Sequence record: NC_021529.2
Strand: one strand, 5' to 3'
Length of the DNA: 64,000 nt
Shown here: positions 4,813 through 41,117 of the stretch, piece by piece
Layout of the letters: every line of letters begins with the position of its first letter
Numbering within the stretch: position 1 is the first letter of the stretch
Program-made: the position numbers and the translations under genes
The notes under the pieces: generated by a model
What the model was told of the DNA's origin: nothing
Seen by the model: the letters and a program-made list of their open reading frames with translations, nothing else
The model's database searches: none

Positions 4813-5373
4813 ATGAAGAAGTTAATTGCGCTATTATTAGCTACGTGTGCGTTCAGCGCATCAGCGAGTCAATGTAAAGTAAATGGTCAAACGCTATCAG
4901 AGAAGCAATGGCACAACGTGCGTGCAGTGTTTGTGAACGGGTGGTATTATGATCTGAGCTGGTCGCTTGCTGCAATTGCAATAGTTGAGTCTAGTGCAGG
5001 CGAGAACATGATCAATCATCGAACGAAAGATTACGGCTTGATGCAGAATAACATAAAAACTGCAACAACACGTTTGAAGCGTTGGCGACAAGCAGGTAGA
5101 GATTTTGCACCGTACAACATTGACAATCCAGAAGATGTAAAGACGATATTGCTTACAGACAGAACAGTTTCTGTTCAGCTTGCAATTGAAGAACTCGAAT
5201 TCTGGAAAGGTGTTCGAGGCGACAACTGGCGTGAAATCTACTCAAGCTACAACGGTGGATATTACAAAGGTCAAAAATGGGAAAAGCGTGCTAGTAAGTA
5301 TGCAGACAAAATTGTTAATACGATGCGAGATCTAAAATCTTGCAGAAACGAACTAATGAGAGGGTTATATTAA
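4813..5373 (+). CDS. Secreted SLT/lysozyme-like protein (T4 Vs.1-like)
   Basis: Signal peptide, AIAIVESS catalytic Glu, YGLMQ, SYNGG. Confidence 0.75.
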   Translation: MKKLIALLLATCAFSASASQCKVNGQTLSEKQWHNVRAVFVNGWYYDLSWSLAAIAIVESSAGENMINHRTKDYGLMQNNIKTATTRLKRWRQAGRDFAPYNIDNPEDVKTILLTDRTVSVQLAIEELEFWKGVRGDNWREIYSSYNGGYYKGQKWEKRASKYADKIVNTMRDLKSCRNELMRGLY

Positions 5374-9965: not shown

Positions 9966-10227
9966 AGACGTACTAGGCAACGTAATCGAAATGAAAGATA
10001 TTGTGTTTCGTCTTTCAAAAGAGCGTTTGTGCGTTGAACCATGCATCGTAACTGGATTTACAGAACACAAAGTTTTATTAAATGACGGTAGACAGTGCGA
10101 CCCAAATCGCGTAGTCGTCGTGACAGAGCAAATTCAAAACAATGGTATTGATTTGTGGTCAAACACACTCGAATTTAAATACCGGGATTACATCATCAAA
10201 GGCTACGAACGCCTAAAACATAAGTGA
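9958..10227 (+). CDS. Hypothetical protein
   Basis: Operon-like overlapping ORF. Confidence 0.65.
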   Translation: MHKDVLGNVIEMKDIVFRLSKERLCVEPCIVTGFTEHKVLLNDGRQCDPNRVVVVTEQIQNNGIDLWSNTLEFKYRDYIIKGYERLKHK

Positions 10228-12988: not shown

Positions 12989-13296
12989 TGGGAAAACTAA
13001 TCGACAATCAAACCGTCAAGGTAACTGATATCGGTAACTTTAACTTGCTAGTCAAACACTGGTATCCAACTGAAGACAAATATCAATCAGTCGAGTTGCT
13101 TCTTGAAGTTGATGAGATTGTAAACATCAAAGTGTATGATGATGCAACTGTCCCGGGTGGTACGTATTCTGTGATAACAAAGACATCGAAGCATTACACA
13201 ACAGTGATCGGGTCGCTATTGCAAGATAGAACATCCCCTGACTACAACATCAAAAAAGATCGACACCGTATTCAGGTAACGACAAAACTCAAATAA
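12988..13296 (+). CDS. Hypothetical protein
   Basis: TAATG coupling; followed by a UUCG terminator. Confidence 0.7.
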   Translation: MGKLIDNQTVKVTDIGNFNLLVKHWYPTEDKYQSVELLLEVDEIVNIKVYDDATVPGGTYSVITKTSKHYTTVIGSLLQDRTSPDYNIKKDRHRIQVTTKLK

Positions 13297-22838: not shown

Positions 22839-23363
22839 CTATTTTCTTCGACTTGCTTTATTTGCTTTTCGTTTCGCTCTTCTAAGCTCTTTACGTTTAG
22901 CAATCTTATCAGCACGTCGAACAGCATCATAATCCGCTGCACAAGACGCTGCAAACGCATCTGGCTTGAATACGGGCTCTTGACCCACATAACCCAGAAT
23001 AGTTCCCTTAGCTTCGTTATACGCGATATGAGACCGGTGTGCAGGGTCTGGGTTGATATCGACGTGAACTTCGAAGCCTCGCGGGCCACACATTGGTTTA
23101 ACTCTCAGTGCAGTTTCACCAGCTTTATAAACTTCAGTCATCAAACGACTTCGAATACCATCTTTGCTAGACATATAAGCAGGTTCAGTTTCGACAGATT
23201 TGAAAACTTGAGCACCTTTACTACCTTCAAGATGTATGATTATCACAGTAGCGTAACTGATCATGTCACTTTTACGCTTGCTATCACACCCGACGTATAT
23301 AGTACTATTCGGATGACTGTTGTTGATAGCTGTTTCTATTGCTTCCCAATCGAACATTTTCAC
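22839..23363 (-). CDS. RNase H-like YkuK (DUF458) family protein
   Basis: IYVGCDS, RLMTEV, EVHVDIN, KPDAFAAS.AAD. Confidence 0.8.
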   Translation of the reverse strand: MKMFDWEAIETAINNSHPNSTIYVGCDSKRKSDMISYATVIIIHLEGSKGAQVFKSVETEPAYMSSKDGIRSRLMTEVYKAGETALRVKPMCGPRGFEVHVDINPDPAHRSHIAYNEAKGTILGYVGQEPVFKPDAFAASCAADYDAVRRADKIAKRKELRRAKRKANKASRRK

Positions 23364-23409: not shown

Positions 23410-24846
23410 TTAAAAACTGTATCGGTCAACGCCGACAGTTTTCAGCATGATCTTGACTGGCTCAAGTTCACCACCTAACAGTGAAGTTAGAATTGATGGA
23501 CTACAACCCGAAACCAGTGCAGTACCTGCTTCACCTGATTTAACAGGAACGTTGTCTAAACGACCGCGAATGTTCCAGAACACTAGTTGAGGCATTTCAT
23601 AACCAGCACGTGCGTACTTAGCTTTGATTGCGTCAAAGTTTGCAACTTCGCCACGACCATACCAACCACCACCGGTGTTTGCTTGATCGAATTCCATGTC
23701 ACTCATGATAAGCAACTTGGTTGGCATATCTTCTTGTGAAAGATTTGCACGACTCGCACGCTCTAAAAGAACGTCGAAACATTTCCCGATGTTAGTGCTC
23801 ATGTCTTCGCCTGAGCGATTCATGTTGTCAAGACGCTCTTTTAGTGAGCTACCGCGCAACTGGTGGAAGTGCGGATTACTTGAGAACGAAATGAATTGAT
23901 CTTTGAAGATACCTTCATTGCGCTCAGCAACGTAAATGCCTAGAGACATTGCTACTTGCTTACAAGTAACTGCGTTAGCAGCGTGTACACCGTTGATCGG
24001 CGTGCTCATAGAGCCAGACACGTCTACAACAGGGATGATACGCTCATCAGAGCCTTCCATGTAGTTCGGTAGAGCTTTCCATTGCTCGTTCGCTACAGAT
24101 GCGTTACCGCGTTCTACGCTTTTAACAACATCGTATGGGAACAATGCACCAGCGTTGATCTTCGCTTCGCCTTTTTGAAGTGATTCGATGTAGTTTGTGT
24201 AACGAGTTTCAGCGTTACGACCAAATGCTTTTTGATAACGAGCAGACGCTACAGAAGGCAACTTACCGAAGTCGATTGCATCCCAATCTTTCGCACACAT
24301 CTTTTGTTCAACAGTGTCAGACAAAAGAGCAAGAATCTTACGCCACTGCTTAGAAGTCACGCCAAGAGACTTGATTGTGCGCTTGAACACGTGACCGTTT
24401 TTGCTGTTTTCGCGAGGGAACCACTTAGCAGCAAGACCATTCTTGTCGTTGACAATCGCATTTGACCACATAGTGATCGCGTCTTTTTCAAGTTTAGTAC
24501 CGAAAGCAACGATTAAGTCATCGAAACGACCTAATTCTGGTACTTTTGACATTACAGCTCGTGCCACTTCTGGCTGTTCATTACAAAGTTTAGCGAACAA
24601 AGTACGGAAAGTACCACGTTCACCCGCACCACCTCGAACGTCACGAGACCATAGCAAGATGCGAGTCGCTAGTTCTGGGTTTTCTGCAAACGCACGACCG
24701 AACAGTGTTTTAGACTGATCGTTGCCACGCATAGCAGCAATACCGAAGAACAAGTTTAGACACTCGTTACCTGAAGTGCTGTGGGTAACTGCACCGTTTG
24801 CTGTACGTGAATCGTTTGATTGCATAGCGTTCATAAATGCTGACAT
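23410..24846 (-). CDS. DUF2828-type helical + vWA protein (Ro60/TROVE-like architecture)
   Basis: RDVRGGAGER, GRFDD, AAKWFPRE, VVDVSGSM MIDAS, SDMEFD, VFWN; GAGG SD before ATG 24846. Confidence 0.8.
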   Translation of the reverse strand: MSAFMNAMQSNDSRTANGAVTHSTSGNECLNLFFGIAAMRGNDQSKTLFGRAFAENPELATRILLWSRDVRGGAGERGTFRTLFAKLCNEQPEVARAVMSKVPELGRFDDLIVAFGTKLEKDAITMWSNAIVNDKNGLAAKWFPRENSKNGHVFKRTIKSLGVTSKQWRKILALLSDTVEQKMCAKDWDAIDFGKLPSVASARYQKAFGRNAETRYTNYIESLQKGEAKINAGALFPYDVVKSVERGNASVANEQWKALPNYMEGSDERIIPVVDVSGSMSTPINGVHAANAVTCKQVAMSLGIYVAERNEGIFKDQFISFSSNPHFHQLRGSSLKERLDNMNRSGEDMSTNIGKCFDVLLERASRANLSQEDMPTKLLIMSDMEFDQANTGGGWYGRGEVANFDAIKAKYARAGYEMPQLVFWNIRGRLDNVPVKSGEAGTALVSGCSPSILTSLLGGELEPVKIMLKTVGVDRYSF

Positions 24847-24882
24847 TGTTGATTTCCTCATATTAATTTGCTGTATAATGTC
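24842..24882 (-). promoter_or_regulatory. 5' UTR hairpin with ACAGCAA motif enclosing the SD and start codon
   Basis: GACATT-ATACAGCAAATTAAT-ATGAGG-AAATCAAC-AATGTC. Confidence 0.7.
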
Positions 24883-24894
24883 GTTGATGTGATG

Positions 24895-24923
24895 ATTATA
24901 CACGGGTTTAAACCCGTATAAAC
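24895..24923 (-). promoter_or_regulatory. T4-like early promoter with a palindromic spacer
   Basis: GTTTAT-17-TATAAT; ACGGGTTTAAACCCGT at 24902-24917. Confidence 0.7.
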
Positions 24924-25576: not shown

Positions 25577-25944
25577 AGATAATCCTTAATTGTCCCCGTG
25601 AAGTGACGAATACATGAGCTGTCAAGACGTTTTCGACCATCGCCTTCTACATCTGGTAGCGTATATTCATCGTTAAATGGTTGACCGCTTTCTTTTGCGA
25701 TCTCGTAAGCATCAGCTCGATTGAAGTACTCACCACAATAGTTGATGAATCCCTGTCCACGATCACCTAGCTCACTTCGGTGTTCAATCGTACAACCAAG
25801 CTCTTTGATTAGCTTAAAAACGCTTTGCATGTTTCGACCGAAGTGGCAGCTATCAGCTACTACAACTTCACGTTTTTCACCGTTTGGTAATGTAACTCGA
25901 ATTGCGTTTGCAGCAGCAGAGATCACATTGACGTGTTCTGACAT
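25573..25944 (-). CDS. Conserved phage hypothetical protein
   Basis: QGF...GEYFNRA.AYEIA..SGQ pattern. Confidence 0.7.
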   Translation of the reverse strand: MSEHVNVISAAANAIRVTLPNGEKREVVVADSCHFGRNMQSVFKLIKELGCTIEHRSELGDRGQGFINYCGEYFNRADAYEIAKESGQPFNDEYTLPDVEGDGRKRLDSSCIRHFTGTIKDYL

Positions 25945-26282
25945 GAATCATACCTCATAAAAATAGAACCAACACGCTTGTATTGATCAGTGTTCATTAA
26001 TAGACGTGCCATTTTAGTGTGAGCAACTGGATTACTCGTCACTAGAATTACAGTCTTTGGATAATTGCCATGATCAATTGCATGAGATAAAATGTGATAT
26101 CCCTCATGACCTAGTGCATCGCCTAAGTCATTGTCCATGAATAATGTGATATCAGTTAGATTCGTGTGCTTGATGAATTTCATGCCTTCTTTATATGTTC
26201 GAAGAACTAGCTTTTCATCTTCACGAACTGTATCTGCGGTTAACTTATTAATGTCACGCAGATCATCGATCAATACATACAT
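25923..26282 (-). CDS. Cyclic-phosphate-processing receiver-like domain protein
   Basis: IDDLR, MDNDLG, GY, VTSNP. Confidence 0.65.
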   Translation of the reverse strand: MYVLIDDLRDINKLTADTVREDEKLVLRTYKEGMKFIKHTNLTDITLFMDNDLGDALGHEGYHILSHAIDHGNYPKTVILVTSNPVAHTKMARLLMNTDQYKRVGSIFMRYDSCQNTSM

Positions 26283-26343
26283 AATATTTCTCTTGCTTAT
26301 TGAATAAATACTATCATACAGTTCAAACAAAGAGAAGTCAACA

Positions 26344-33110: not shown

Positions 33111-33223
33111 TGAGTGTCATTACTTGCGCCATCCGAGACTAGAGATACCAACTCTAAACGGGATTCGAACCCGAAACATTTCTTTTATCGGAAGAATTTG
33201 TAATTGTTTGCTGAAAACACTCA
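33111..33223 (-). ncRNA. ACAGCAA-family RNA enclosing an Ile-type anticodon arm and a T arm
   Basis: TGAGTGT/ACACTCA; CAGCAAACAATT; TTCTT-CCGATAA-AAGAA; CGGG-TTCGAAT-CCCG. Confidence 0.65.
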
Positions 33224-34064: not shown

Positions 34065-34123
34065 AGTAATCGTTTTTTGCTTTTTTAAAATAAAAGTTTT
34101 GTATTGTTTGCTGCAAGATTACT
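34065..34123 (-). ncRNA. Minimal ACAGCAA-family RNA with a Lys-type anticodon stem-loop
   Basis: AGTAATC/GATTACT; CAGCAAACAAT; CTTTT-ATTTTAA-AAAAG; CAAAAAAC. Confidence 0.6.
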
Positions 34124-37440: not shown

Positions 37441-37556
37441 TGGTAGTCGGGGCTGGATTCGAACCAGCGACCACGTGCTTAACAGGCAATTGAAAGAGTG
37501 CTGGAGCGATACTTGACAGTATCATTCTTCGTGCTCTACCACTGAGCTACCCGACT
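37441..37556 (-). tRNA. tRNA-Asn(GTT) with a 41-nt insertion between nt 28 and 29
   Basis: Removing 37489-37529 gives a 75-nt cloverleaf with CGTGC/GCACG stem and CCA. Confidence 0.75.
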
Positions 37557-39341: not shown

Positions 39342-39456
39342 GAGGTGAAGTGCAGGACTCGAACCTGCGACATCCGGCGTGCATGTGAATGCAGCATGAA
39401 ATCTTATCAGACTTCTTTTTTGGGCCGGCGCTCTAACCAACTGAGCTAACTTCACC
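39342..39456 (-). ncRNA. tRNA-like RNA with a 45-nt two-hairpin insert replacing the anticodon loop
   Basis: Canonical D and T arms, CCGGC/GCCGG stem, G-1:C73, ends TCA. Confidence 0.65.
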
Positions 39457-39469
39457 ATTGTAAAAACAC

Positions 39470-39599
39470 ATTGATGCGGGTGCAGGATTCGAACCTGCGT
39501 CACGATCTTATGAATGATATGCGAATTGATTGCCGTACAGATTCTTAACAGAATCAGTTTTTTGCTACGTGTGCTGCCACTACACCAACCCGCATCAAT
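39470..39599 (-). ncRNA. tRNA-like RNA (CAT, 8-nt loop) with a 49-nt insertion at 28/29
   Basis: 12-bp terminal stem, D and T arms, TACGGCAATCAATT motif. Confidence 0.65.
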
Positions 39600-39867
39600 A
39601 TGTTTTCGAGAGTGCTTGCATAGACCTAACGGTAATTCCCTACACAAGCACCAAAAAATCCTATTATATTTGCCTTAGCTAATCACAACACAACCTGGAG
39701 TCGTGCGCTTTAAGTACGGGTTGATTGACCCGTTCGCGTATGATTAGCGTAAAAGTATGATTACGCACCTTTTCTTCTTCAATGTCCAAGGCAAAAAGGA
39801 CGATGAATACTAGTGCGAGAAGATATACAATCAAATTGTTCACCTCGCTTAAACAGTGAGAGTACAT

Positions 39868-39990
39868 TGGTCGAGTGTAACAGAATCGAACTGTTCCCAC
39901 GATCTCCCTATGATATGCGTAAATTGGTTGCTGAATATAATCATGTCTGATTACAGTATGCTACGTGTGCTGCCACTACACCAACACTCG
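39868..39990 (-). tRNA. tRNA-Pro(AGG)-like with a 49-nt insertion at 28/29
   Basis: C1:G72, A73, CCA, loop ATAGGGA; 74-nt cloverleaf once the insert is removed. Confidence 0.7.
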
Positions 39991-40005
39991 ACCAATGTAC
40001 TCTCG

Positions 40006-40414: not shown

Positions 40415-40669
40415 TTAAACAGAAAGAATAATACCGCTTTCTGTCTCACCGCGCTCAAGCGCAGCATGTTTGATCTGTAGTTGTGATACCGCTTGTTGAA
40501 GCTCAAGAATAGCTTTGTCATAAAGCTTGTTGTTCTCTTTAAGCAAAGTAATCTGATCAGTCTGTAAGCCGACAATATACGTCAATAGAACGACGCTCTC
40601 ATCTGAATTAAGTGATTCAGGGTCTTCTTGATACTTCTTCAATACTGCTTCGGTAGATAGATCAGTCAT
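40415..40669 (-). CDS. Coiled-coil hypothetical protein
   Basis: Overlaps the 57B stop. Confidence 0.65.
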   Translation of the reverse strand: MTDLSTEAVLKKYQEDPESLNSDESVVLLTYIVGLQTDQITLLKENNKLYDKAILELQQAVSQLQIKHAALERGETESGIILSV

Positions 40670-41117
40670 TGTTAGCAACCCAATTTAAGTCTAGTGGTTC
40701 GATGTATTCATCAACAAGCCGAACTTCAGCGTTAACAAACATCGGTGTGATAACGTCATCATAAGATAACGTAACGTGAGGTTGATAGTCAGGGTAATCG
40801 TGTGTACCACCGATAGAGATAAGGTCTTCGTGACGCTCGACAAGTTCAGGACATGTCATTTTAGCAACAACTGCGTGCTTACCGTCTTGCGTTTTCCAGC
40901 AGTCAATTTGTTCGACAGTGGCAACGAAAGTTGTATCTACGGTAGGAACATCAATTTGTTTGCGACTAAAAAGCACAGTCACATGAAAATCATCTGGATC
41001 TAGCGGATTTTGCAGACGAAGCGTTTTCTGCAATTGAATAAGTTCTTGCTTACTCGCTTCGTCTACTTTGATACCAACGTAAGTTCCCTGACTTTCAAGG
41101 AACTTAGATAGTTTCAT
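40662..41117 (-). CDS. gp57B: 2H phosphoesterase, T4 gp57B/Acb1 homologue
   Basis: HVT x2; LRLQNP..HVT..FSR aligns to T4 57B; syntenic with 57A and gene 1. Confidence 0.85.
   Translation of the reverse strand: MKLSKFLESQGTYVGIKVDEASKQELIQLQKTLRLQNPLDPDDFHVTVLFSRKQIDVPTVDTTFVATVEQIDCWKTQDGKHAVVAKMTCPELVERHEDLISIGGTHDYPDYQPHVTLSYDDVITPMFVNAEVRLVDEYIEPLDLNWVANND

Follow-up and report, generated by a model that had tools for sequence, protein, structure and literature searches.

What kind of RNA is encoded at the upstream end of the tRNA array of Vibrio phage nt-1, where a gene that keeps the elbow of a transfer RNA (tRNA) carries a 49-nucleotide (nt) insert in its anticodon stem, an 8-nt anticodon loop and no CCA end? 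The stretch of DNA analysed here (the window, 64,000 nt) matches record NC_021529.2 with 100% identity and derives from nt-1, a KVP40-like T4-type phage. All coordinates are window positions, and the gene, hereafter the target, was read on the minus strand, that of an array of 28 standard tRNA genes (ARAGORN, Rfam). A first-pass annotation, made from the letters alone, had proposed either a non-chargeable mimic or a quadruplet/frameshift-type anticodon. We suggest that the target would be a functional tRNA-derived non-coding RNA rather than a working decoder, and we consider it moderately probable that it is the Y-RNA-like partner of a phage protein with the predicted fold of Ro60. Particles of Ro60 and Y RNA have been described in animals, in some bacteria and in a small number of phages.

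Much of the target is canonical tRNA: a 7-bp acceptor, a D arm with the usual A14, G18G19 and A21, and a T arm with GTTCGAATC. It departs from that pattern in the anticodon arm (39503–39569, parsed by script), in which A26 and C27-G28 are followed by the 49-nt insert, ATC, the loop ATTCATAA with 8 nt instead of 7, GAT and a second CG (C42-G43), leaving the stem split 2+3. Beyond it a 4-nt variable loop, a standard T arm and the acceptor 3' strand lead to an end that reads ...ACCCGCA-UCAA, in which UCAA pairs with the leader. The 12-bp terminal stem seen in the first pass within 39470–39599 is real and runs on to 20 pairs at 39462–39607, the 7 of the acceptor and 13 between leader and trailer, two of them G-U; against shuffled sequence the whole fold has z = −3.6. 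The TCAA end noted in place of CCA likewise stands, UCAA in the RNA, against an encoded CCA at the called 3' end of 27 of the 28 standard nt-1 tRNAs. Alignment (A3, below) bears out the comparison that had been drawn with a Pro-like RNA, here paralogue D: the two share the D arm, the insert length and also the start of the insert, differ in acceptor, T arm and loop (ATAGGGA in D), and have insert hairpins that are unlike in sequence and yet each pair. The anticodon-arm layout of D (39900–39965) matches that of the target, 49-nt insert included. By alignment D is a paralogue of the second tRNA-Pro of nt-1, while the body of the target, by reading only, resembles Glu-type RNAs with such an insert in other phages.

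Standard annotation passes the target by. It is not among the 28 ARAGORN genes, the Rfam tRNA model (RF00005) does not match it at the gathering score or at E ≤ 10, and the nt-1 record has nothing at its place. Its sisters P3 and P5, unlike the target, are called by ARAGORN and by that model, with large insertions, and tRNA was the only family matched in an Rfam search of the window.

The element is nevertheless a real, conserved gene for a selected RNA structure. BLAST finds it in 64 phage records, 49 of them with at least 80% coverage. In alignment A3 (11 target orthologues, two copies of D and one cyanophage relative, 14 sequences in all) the proposed structure pairs in 97.5% of cells and changes on both sides occur at 25 of the 40 pairs; none of 500 shuffles reached any of these measures, and partners slid out of register pair in only 31–51%. 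The terminal helix alone has 14 compensatory pairs, among them −1:73 (A-U in nt-1, U-A in KVP40) and −3:75. The extent of pairing and the number of compensatory changes, which include the 13 pairs beyond the acceptor, thus place the structure under selection. A decaying tRNA pseudogene, the label that the KVP40 record gives to the sister genes ('tRNA-Pseudo-3/-4/-5', the KVP40 orthologue of the target being unannotated), would suit the irregular anticodon loop and the missing CCA. We find it scarcely credible: compensatory changes are present in every helix of the target, identity among phages is 82–97% against about 86% in flanking DNA, the gene is kept in at least 49 phage records, and the same architecture recurs in distant phage families.

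Selection on the structure does not extend to the parts that would decode. The loop ATTCATAA is identical in seven phages (nt-1, CZ01, VS2, QD01, KVP40, phi-pp2 and F86), and UCA also occupies positions 34–36 of 7-nt loops in the 1.081.O orthologue and in a Yersinia jumbo-phage relative, which could be taken to mean that the matured 8-nt loop A-U-UCAU-A-A reads four bases (+1 frameshift) or the opal codon UGA. Among orthologues, however, loops span 7, 8 or 9 nt with differing triplets: ATTTCAA in V09, ATTTCCAA (8 nt) in phi-Grn1, CTTCAAA in 1.081.O, ATTCTAA in 6E35-1b and a 7- or 9-nt CTCTTAA-type loop in D479, with ATCATAA in the cyanophage relative; besides UCA there are TTC, TCT and CTT and the 8-nt phi-Grn1 loop. 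Measured as mean pairwise difference, variability is 0.27 in the loop, as high as in freely compensating helices, against 0.13 in the D arm region and 0.04 in the T arm. From phage to phage, changes at positions 73 and 75 are accompanied by changes in their leader partners and pairing is kept, and the place of CCA reads UCA in the nt-1 target and CUA in the KVP40 orthologue. A loop that drifts in length and sequence, together with covariation of 73 and 75 with the 5' leader, makes a dedicated quadruplet decoder, and with it an opal suppressor, extremely unlikely; CCA is lacking, the discriminator is variable and paired, and such a decoder would also need the insert to be spliced out. Nor was any sign of recoding seen in nt-1, no search aimed at it having been made. 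Frameshift-suppressor tRNAs such as sufD have an 8-nt anticodon loop and a fixed extended anticodon in an otherwise normal, chargeable tRNA with CCA, unlike the target, whose loop is unconserved and whose ends are buried. The quadruplet half of the earlier proposal is accordingly not supported, while its other half agrees with what is seen: positions 73–76 lie inside a covarying 20-pair helix, 73 and 75 follow the leader, CCA is lacking and the family is tied to a Ro60-shaped protein. As judged from these sequences the target probably no longer decodes, and a non-charged mimic fits, although trimming and CCA addition may occur.

The long helix could also be taken as the whole point of the locus, an RNase III or RNase P site, or a terminator, by which the polycistronic tRNA transcript is shaped, in an RNA without a role of its own. 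Its 20 pairs make about two helical turns, a U-run lies 3' of it and the next tRNA-like gene begins 14 nt downstream. This account is very unlikely, as it leaves the conserved D and T arms, the insert and the link of the insert to the Ro60-like protein unexplained, and a consensus scan found no terminator at the target's place.

The insert itself behaves as an autonomous, conserved RNA element, which we call the module. Twenty diverse module inserts were aligned (A1), and a covariance model (R1) was built for the module. In the consensus an A-rich 5' strand leads into a hairpin of 6–8 bp, capped by a 4-nt loop, and the 3' strand that follows carries YRGCAA, whose GCA is invariant; the whole is set in a helix junction. 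Of the A1 cells for this hairpin 96.4% pair, all seven of its pairs change on both sides, and none of 500 shuffles did as well. R1 matches four places in nt-1, five in KVP40, three in the Erwinia jumbo phage pEa_SNUABM_12, two in the Synechococcus phage BUCT-ZZ01 and six in Vibrio phage D479, and it recovered copies outside its training set, namely P5 and KVP40 Pseudo-4 and -5. The carriers are tRNA-like genes of KVP40-like, Aeromonas, Eneladus and cyanophage genomes. The module sits at position 28/29 in most members and elsewhere at 29/30, 31/32, or inside or after the loop, and the proximal and distal anticodon-stem pairs sum to 5 bp in all of them. We found no description of these inserts in the literature, nor of DUF2828 in phages.

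DUF2828 is half of the signature of the protein with which the module travels. A protein with DUF2828 and DUF7788 and a vWA MIDAS motif is present once in every module phage tested; PHROGs and RefSeq label its family 'RNA-binding protein', and IMG/VR holds 324 loci of it. Pfam, at E ≤ 10, adds only a weak vWA match. An AlphaFold model of the nt-1 protein (26 homologues; predicted local distance difference test score 80.4, predicted template modelling score 0.79) was compared with the PDB by structure, and the top 13 matches were all Ro60/TROVE proteins aligned over their full length, with E-values from 8e-9 to 4e-5. They come from Thermus phage phiLo, Xenopus, human and Deinococcus, and the next matches are isolated vWA domains. 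The predicted fold is therefore that of Ro60. Around the nt-1 gene, a cREC_REC 'cyclic-phosphate processing receiver' protein (25923–26330, minus strand; PF20274, 59 bits) lies 1 kb upstream with three small open reading frames (ORFs) between, and an RNaseH_like protein (22839–23363, minus strand; PF04308, 63 bits) lies directly downstream; going by their domain assignments, these neighbours may lend the locus an RNA end-processing flavour. In Erwinia phage pEa_SNUABM_12 (100451–102977) an ORF for an Rnl2-type RNA ligase stands directly upstream of the Ro60-like gene, and on one IMG/VR contig a permuted tmRNA (RF04321, 71.7 bits; L098, 1353–1676) is found 3.4 kb upstream of it.

Module and protein occur together. 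DUF7788 is present in 12 of 12 module-positive complete genomes and in none of nine module-negative ones, of which five are tRNA-rich phages (T4, 44RR2.8t, RB43, S-PM2 and T5) and four are complete IMG/VR genomes; these last matched the DNA pattern of the module and not R1, which for them searched just the fetched locus. The protein is missing from four R1-positive records, all of them fragments (2–32% complete). Position agrees with distribution. Downstream of the protein gene in the cyanophage BUCT-ZZ01 come a tRNA-Met and two module RNAs, all on one strand; in three contigs from metagenome-assembled genomes a module RNA precedes the protein gene by 100–440 nt, and in Aeromonas phages the two are 2.5–4 kb apart, again on one strand. 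With strict criteria, 80 loci yielded 22 long tRNA-shaped genes, spread over 13 of them and without exception on the strand of the protein gene; reversed-sequence controls gave two. The protein gene often lies inside tRNA arrays, which accounts for part of this. R1 itself matched nine times in the 80 IMG/VR protein loci, and in many phages the module RNAs are more than 10 kb away or too divergent. Among 39 loci of the protein from a prokaryote collection R1 (default filters) gave no match, while a separate script found module-bearing tRNA-like genes beside three, so R1 is too narrow for distant members; it is also blind to permuted copies. Six loci (L045, L047, L050–L052 and L101) also have, 1–4 kb downstream of the Ro60-like gene and in its orientation, other long tRNA-shaped genes (109–147 nt) with a Leu/Ser-like D arm and different large inserts unmatched by R1.

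The protein's own messenger imitates the module. In nt-1 a hairpin and a module-like strand stand just upstream of the ribosome-binding site (Table 1), and of 91 distinct leaders of the protein gene 22 contain ACAGCAA, in a cluster between −24 and −50, the background being 2.8% (p ~1e-14). Several leaders of distant homologues have a stem around ACAGCAA with an A-rich strand, ending at the ribosome-binding site. Rfam found no YrlA match in seven loci of the protein gene. Roughly 100 nt ahead of position 10001 in the IMG/VR loci L058 and L092, the 5' half of a tRNA continues into the opening part of a module (GATTCTGATAAAGGA) and then directly into the Ro60-like gene's ribosome-binding site, as if a truncated module RNA might be serving as leader. 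Taken together, where the module occurs, where it lies and how the protein's leader imitates it suggest that the Ro60-shaped protein binds it.

Table 1. Features of the nt-1 window that belong to the module RNAs and their presumed protein partner.
Feature	Coordinates	Strand	Evidence or remark
Whole conserved RNA: tRNA-shaped body plus 13-pair leader/trailer extension of the acceptor (20-pair terminal helix)	39462..39607	-	terminal helix (helix 1) 95.7% paired, 14/20 pairs changed on both sides
tRNA-like core, acceptor position 1 to position 72, 120 nt	39475..39594	-	7-bp acceptor, D arm GTGT/AGTGGCA/GCAC, T arm GCAGG-TTCGAAT-CCTGC
49-nt side-arm module between tRNA positions 28 and 29: A-rich 5' strand, hairpin, 3' strand with ACGGCAA	39519..39567	-	R1 59.8 bits (copy in training set)
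Module hairpin GATTCT-GTTA-AGAATC	39540..39555	-	covariation over 20 diverse modules
8-nt 'anticodon' loop ATTCATAA on 3-bp stem ATC/GAT, unconserved among orthologues	39508..39515	-	
3' trailer strand of the extended helix, beginning UCAA where a tRNA has NCCA	39462..39474	-	
Paralogue D: Pro-like, loop ATAGGGA, 21-bp terminal helix including encoded ACCA, 49-nt module at the same place	39859..40003	-	R1 45.4 bits
Paralogue P5: tRNA body, module plus second hairpin inside a 5-bp anticodon stem, UCA end	39345..39455	-	R1 27.6 bits, outside training set
Paralogue P3: Asn(GTT)-like, 41-nt module at 28/29, ACCA end	37445..37556	-	R1 34.1 bits
Minimal open-ended module copy, 59 nt: terminal stem, TTGCAGCAAAC, A-rich strand, no tRNA body	34065..34123	-	sequence read only
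Permuted tRNA-like RNA: ends pair beside TTTCAGCAAAC, acceptor-like stem loop-closed	33111..33223	-	sequence read only
Gene of the DUF2828/DUF7788 protein, 478 amino acids, Ro60-shaped presumed partner of the module RNAs	23410..24846	-	
mRNA leader of the protein gene: 7-bp hairpin, then ACAGCAAAT just upstream of the ribosome-binding site; module look-alike	24847..24903	-	

The module is displayed in several topologies. The perfect 5-bp anticodon stem of P5 encloses the module and a second hairpin, with no canonical anticodon loop left. A free-standing module occurs in the IMG/VR locus L129 (UViG_3300012347_000364, 4898–5077), where a 5-bp helix, GGGAC/GTCCC, closes the module and GCCA follows. 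Its neighbour is an RNA of 117 nt in which the two ends form the module hairpin, ACAGCAA and an A-rich strand lie at the junction, a loop closes the acceptor-like stem, and T arm, D arm and an anticodon-like arm are intact (minimum free energy −36.9, z = −5.3); it is a circular permutation of the target architecture. A second permuted case lies in L143 (about 13100–13260), and an Rfam search of a permuted relative gave no YrlA match. The free-standing and permuted forms cannot be simple introns. Close to the target itself, a hairpin about 10 nt upstream of the extended helix (39610–39660, minus strand) is kept by different sequences, GTGCTTG/CAAGCAC in nt-1 and TGCTTACG/CGTAAGCA in KVP40, and a small ORF lies between D and the target (about 39690–39850, minus strand), its N-terminus hydrophobic and its ribosome-binding site GAGGTG; KVP40 has an annotated coding sequence of 73 amino acids there.

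Several observations weigh against a Y-RNA-like role. Pfam TROVE has no match in four phage genomes, and phmmer and a profile search of PDB sequences with the DUF2828/DUF7788 protein returned nothing relevant. The genomes behind the co-occurrence are related and not phylogenetically independent. The nt-1 target and the protein gene, though they share a strand and a tRNA region, are 14.6 kb apart. The YrlA model scores only 23.5 bits on the target (gathering score 69), by a spurious join of the target's T arm to the D arm of the next gene. The remaining points speak for the main rival, that the target is an intron-bearing tRNA gene in which the module is a new protein-assisted intron, the exons are rejoined by phage ligases, the Ro60-like protein is a recognition factor, and the terminal helix is a precursor feature trimmed by RNase III or RNase P before CCA is added. 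From the flanks as read, removal of the insert would leave a perfect CGATC/GATCG stem in the target, and the same 5-bp restoration holds for every member with the module at 28/29, 29/30 or 31/32. Among the other members, the majority have a canonical 7-nt loop (Asn, Lys, Tyr, Ile, Met/Ile, Pro, Glu) and roughly half an encoded CCA, as intron-bearing working tRNAs would. Rnl1- and Rnl2-type RNA ligases are present in five of five module phages tested.

Other features can be set on the same side. The insertion site is variable, as it is in archaeal introns; permuted genes with their ends in the module hairpin recall the permuted tRNA genes of red algae (Cyanidioschyzon), which mature via the splicing machinery; and the Rnl2-type ligase of the Erwinia phage adjoins the protein gene, as the cREC and RNase H-like proteins flank it in nt-1. 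Even so we judge the intron reading unlikely, though the most serious of the alternatives. The free-standing modules with their 5-bp helix and GCCA, the 59-nt minimal RNA and the mRNA-leader copies cannot be introns. Protein-cut tRNA introns of archaea and eukaryotes are short inserts at variable places of the anticodon arm whose removal restores the arm; unlike them, the module has an interior conserved across distant phages, occurs free-standing and in mRNA leaders, and is specific to bacterial viruses. With loop, discriminator and CCA unconserved in the target, a spliced product would be no stable decoder, and T4 has the same ligases without modules. No splicing endonuclease came up, no search aimed at one having been made; RtcB was not found in the five module phages, and minimum-free-energy folds contained no bulge-helix-bulge motif, which was not searched for systematically. 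Two further candidates were dropped. The product of gp57B (40662–41117, minus strand), which both the nt-1 and the KVP40 record name 'RNA ligase', was set aside as a splicing ligase because Acb1, an anti-CBASS protein (PF23474, 159 bits), is a much closer match to it than LigT-type families are, and a group I intron is out of question with an insert of 49 nt against a ribozyme core of at least 200 nt and no Rfam Intron_gpI match.

The Y-RNA-like and intron readings do not exclude each other, as the protein could guide processing. In one such combination the module would be the signal of a phage cut-and-rejoin pathway, guided by the Ro60-like protein and dependent on Rnl1/Rnl2 and cREC for the healing and sealing of ends, that removes modules from tRNA precursors and matures the permuted genes; the target would then be a switchable pro-tRNA for a non-standard decoder with an 8-nt loop. 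We hold this to be rather unlikely, but if true it would be the first protein-guided tRNA splicing system in the bacterial and viral world.

Returning to the target as a Y-RNA-like partner, its closest known counterparts are the YrlA RNAs, in which a tRNA-like domain is joined to a Ro60/Rsr-binding stem with the motif GNCGAAN0-1G (Chen et al. 2014, PMC4201824; Rfam RF02553). Like YrlA-type Y RNAs, the target has about 100–150 nt, a tRNA-like domain with D and T arms and a long stem made from its 5' and 3' ends (PMC4201824), and the family resembles YrlA systems in that the RNA is encoded with a ring-plus-vWA protein of predicted Ro60-type fold, often within a few kb and on the same strand. Unlike YrlA, it lacks the GNCGAAN0-1G motif in its terminal helix, CG-TAGCAAAA at the module start being at most a loose echo (CGAAG or CGAAA occurs there in a few other members); it ends at the acceptor as a real tRNA does; and its presumed docking element is a capped side arm with YRGCAA in the anticodon stem. 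The partner differs too, the nt-1 protein being outside Pfam TROVE and Ro60-like by predicted fold only, with its gene 14.6 kb away, where about 4 kb from a Ro60 orthologue is the mark for YrlA. Because the YrlA model does not match, the motif is absent, the topology is different and the protein falls outside Pfam TROVE, the target is not a member of the YrlA family.

Among phages the nearest parallel is Thermus phage phiLo, whose Ro60 has partner RNAs, Yrl1 and Yrl2, beside its gene (PMC12135203; PDB 9KOP, 9L5Y). The phiLo Ro60 is the best structural match of the nt-1 protein, with a sequence identity of about 15%, but its RNAs, unlike the target, are stem-bulge-stem Y RNAs with a CGAA motif and no tRNA-embedded modules. 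A review of jumbo phages says that some have a TROVE protein with a tRNA-like partner, and no more (PMC7824862). Orthologues of P3, P5 and a fifth member are already present in phage records, as tRNA-Pseudo-3/-4/-5 of KVP40 and as tRNA-OTHER or odd calls in phi-pp2 and phi-Grn1; they are the same family, annotated there as pseudogenes or as tRNAs with arbitrary anticodons. The target is also like the stable RNAs C and D (species 1 and 2) of T4, which have 119–139 nt, an unassigned function and a place inside a T4-type tRNA array, although T4 has neither an R1 module nor the DUF7788 protein. In T4, rnaC and rnaD (L109, 1909–2172) stand at the end of the tRNA cluster, one of them with a T-arm-like element.

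We therefore picture the target, provisionally, as a tRNA look-alike that a Ro60-type protein would hold by its side arm. It keeps the elbow formed by D and T arms and a 2+3-bp anticodon stem, while both of its ends would be buried in the 20-pair helix and its loop left free to drift. The A-rich strand, hairpin and YRGCAA strand on the 5' side of the anticodon stem would stay in the mature RNA as the most likely docking site for the Ro60-shaped protein, and such a partner would link the ring/vWA protein with a tRNA mimic; its purpose in the infected cell would probably be surveillance or repair of tRNA, or else counter-defence.

The target thus looks like a new viral kind of 'Y RNA', and it belongs to a large set of phages with a wide distribution (KVP40-like vibriophages, Aeromonas T4-like phages, Eneladus jumbo phages and a cyanophage) that have a divergent Ro60-shaped protein and several RNAs displaying one module, on real tRNA bodies, permuted tRNA bodies, mini-helices and the protein's own mRNA leader. 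For these genes the analysis corrects the label 'pseudo-tRNA'. Should the module be spliced, it would represent a new class of tRNA intron. KVP40 or nt-1 growing on Vibrio would offer a genetically tractable system for asking how a Ro60-type particle acts on tRNA mimics, whether in repair, as a decoy or in quality control.

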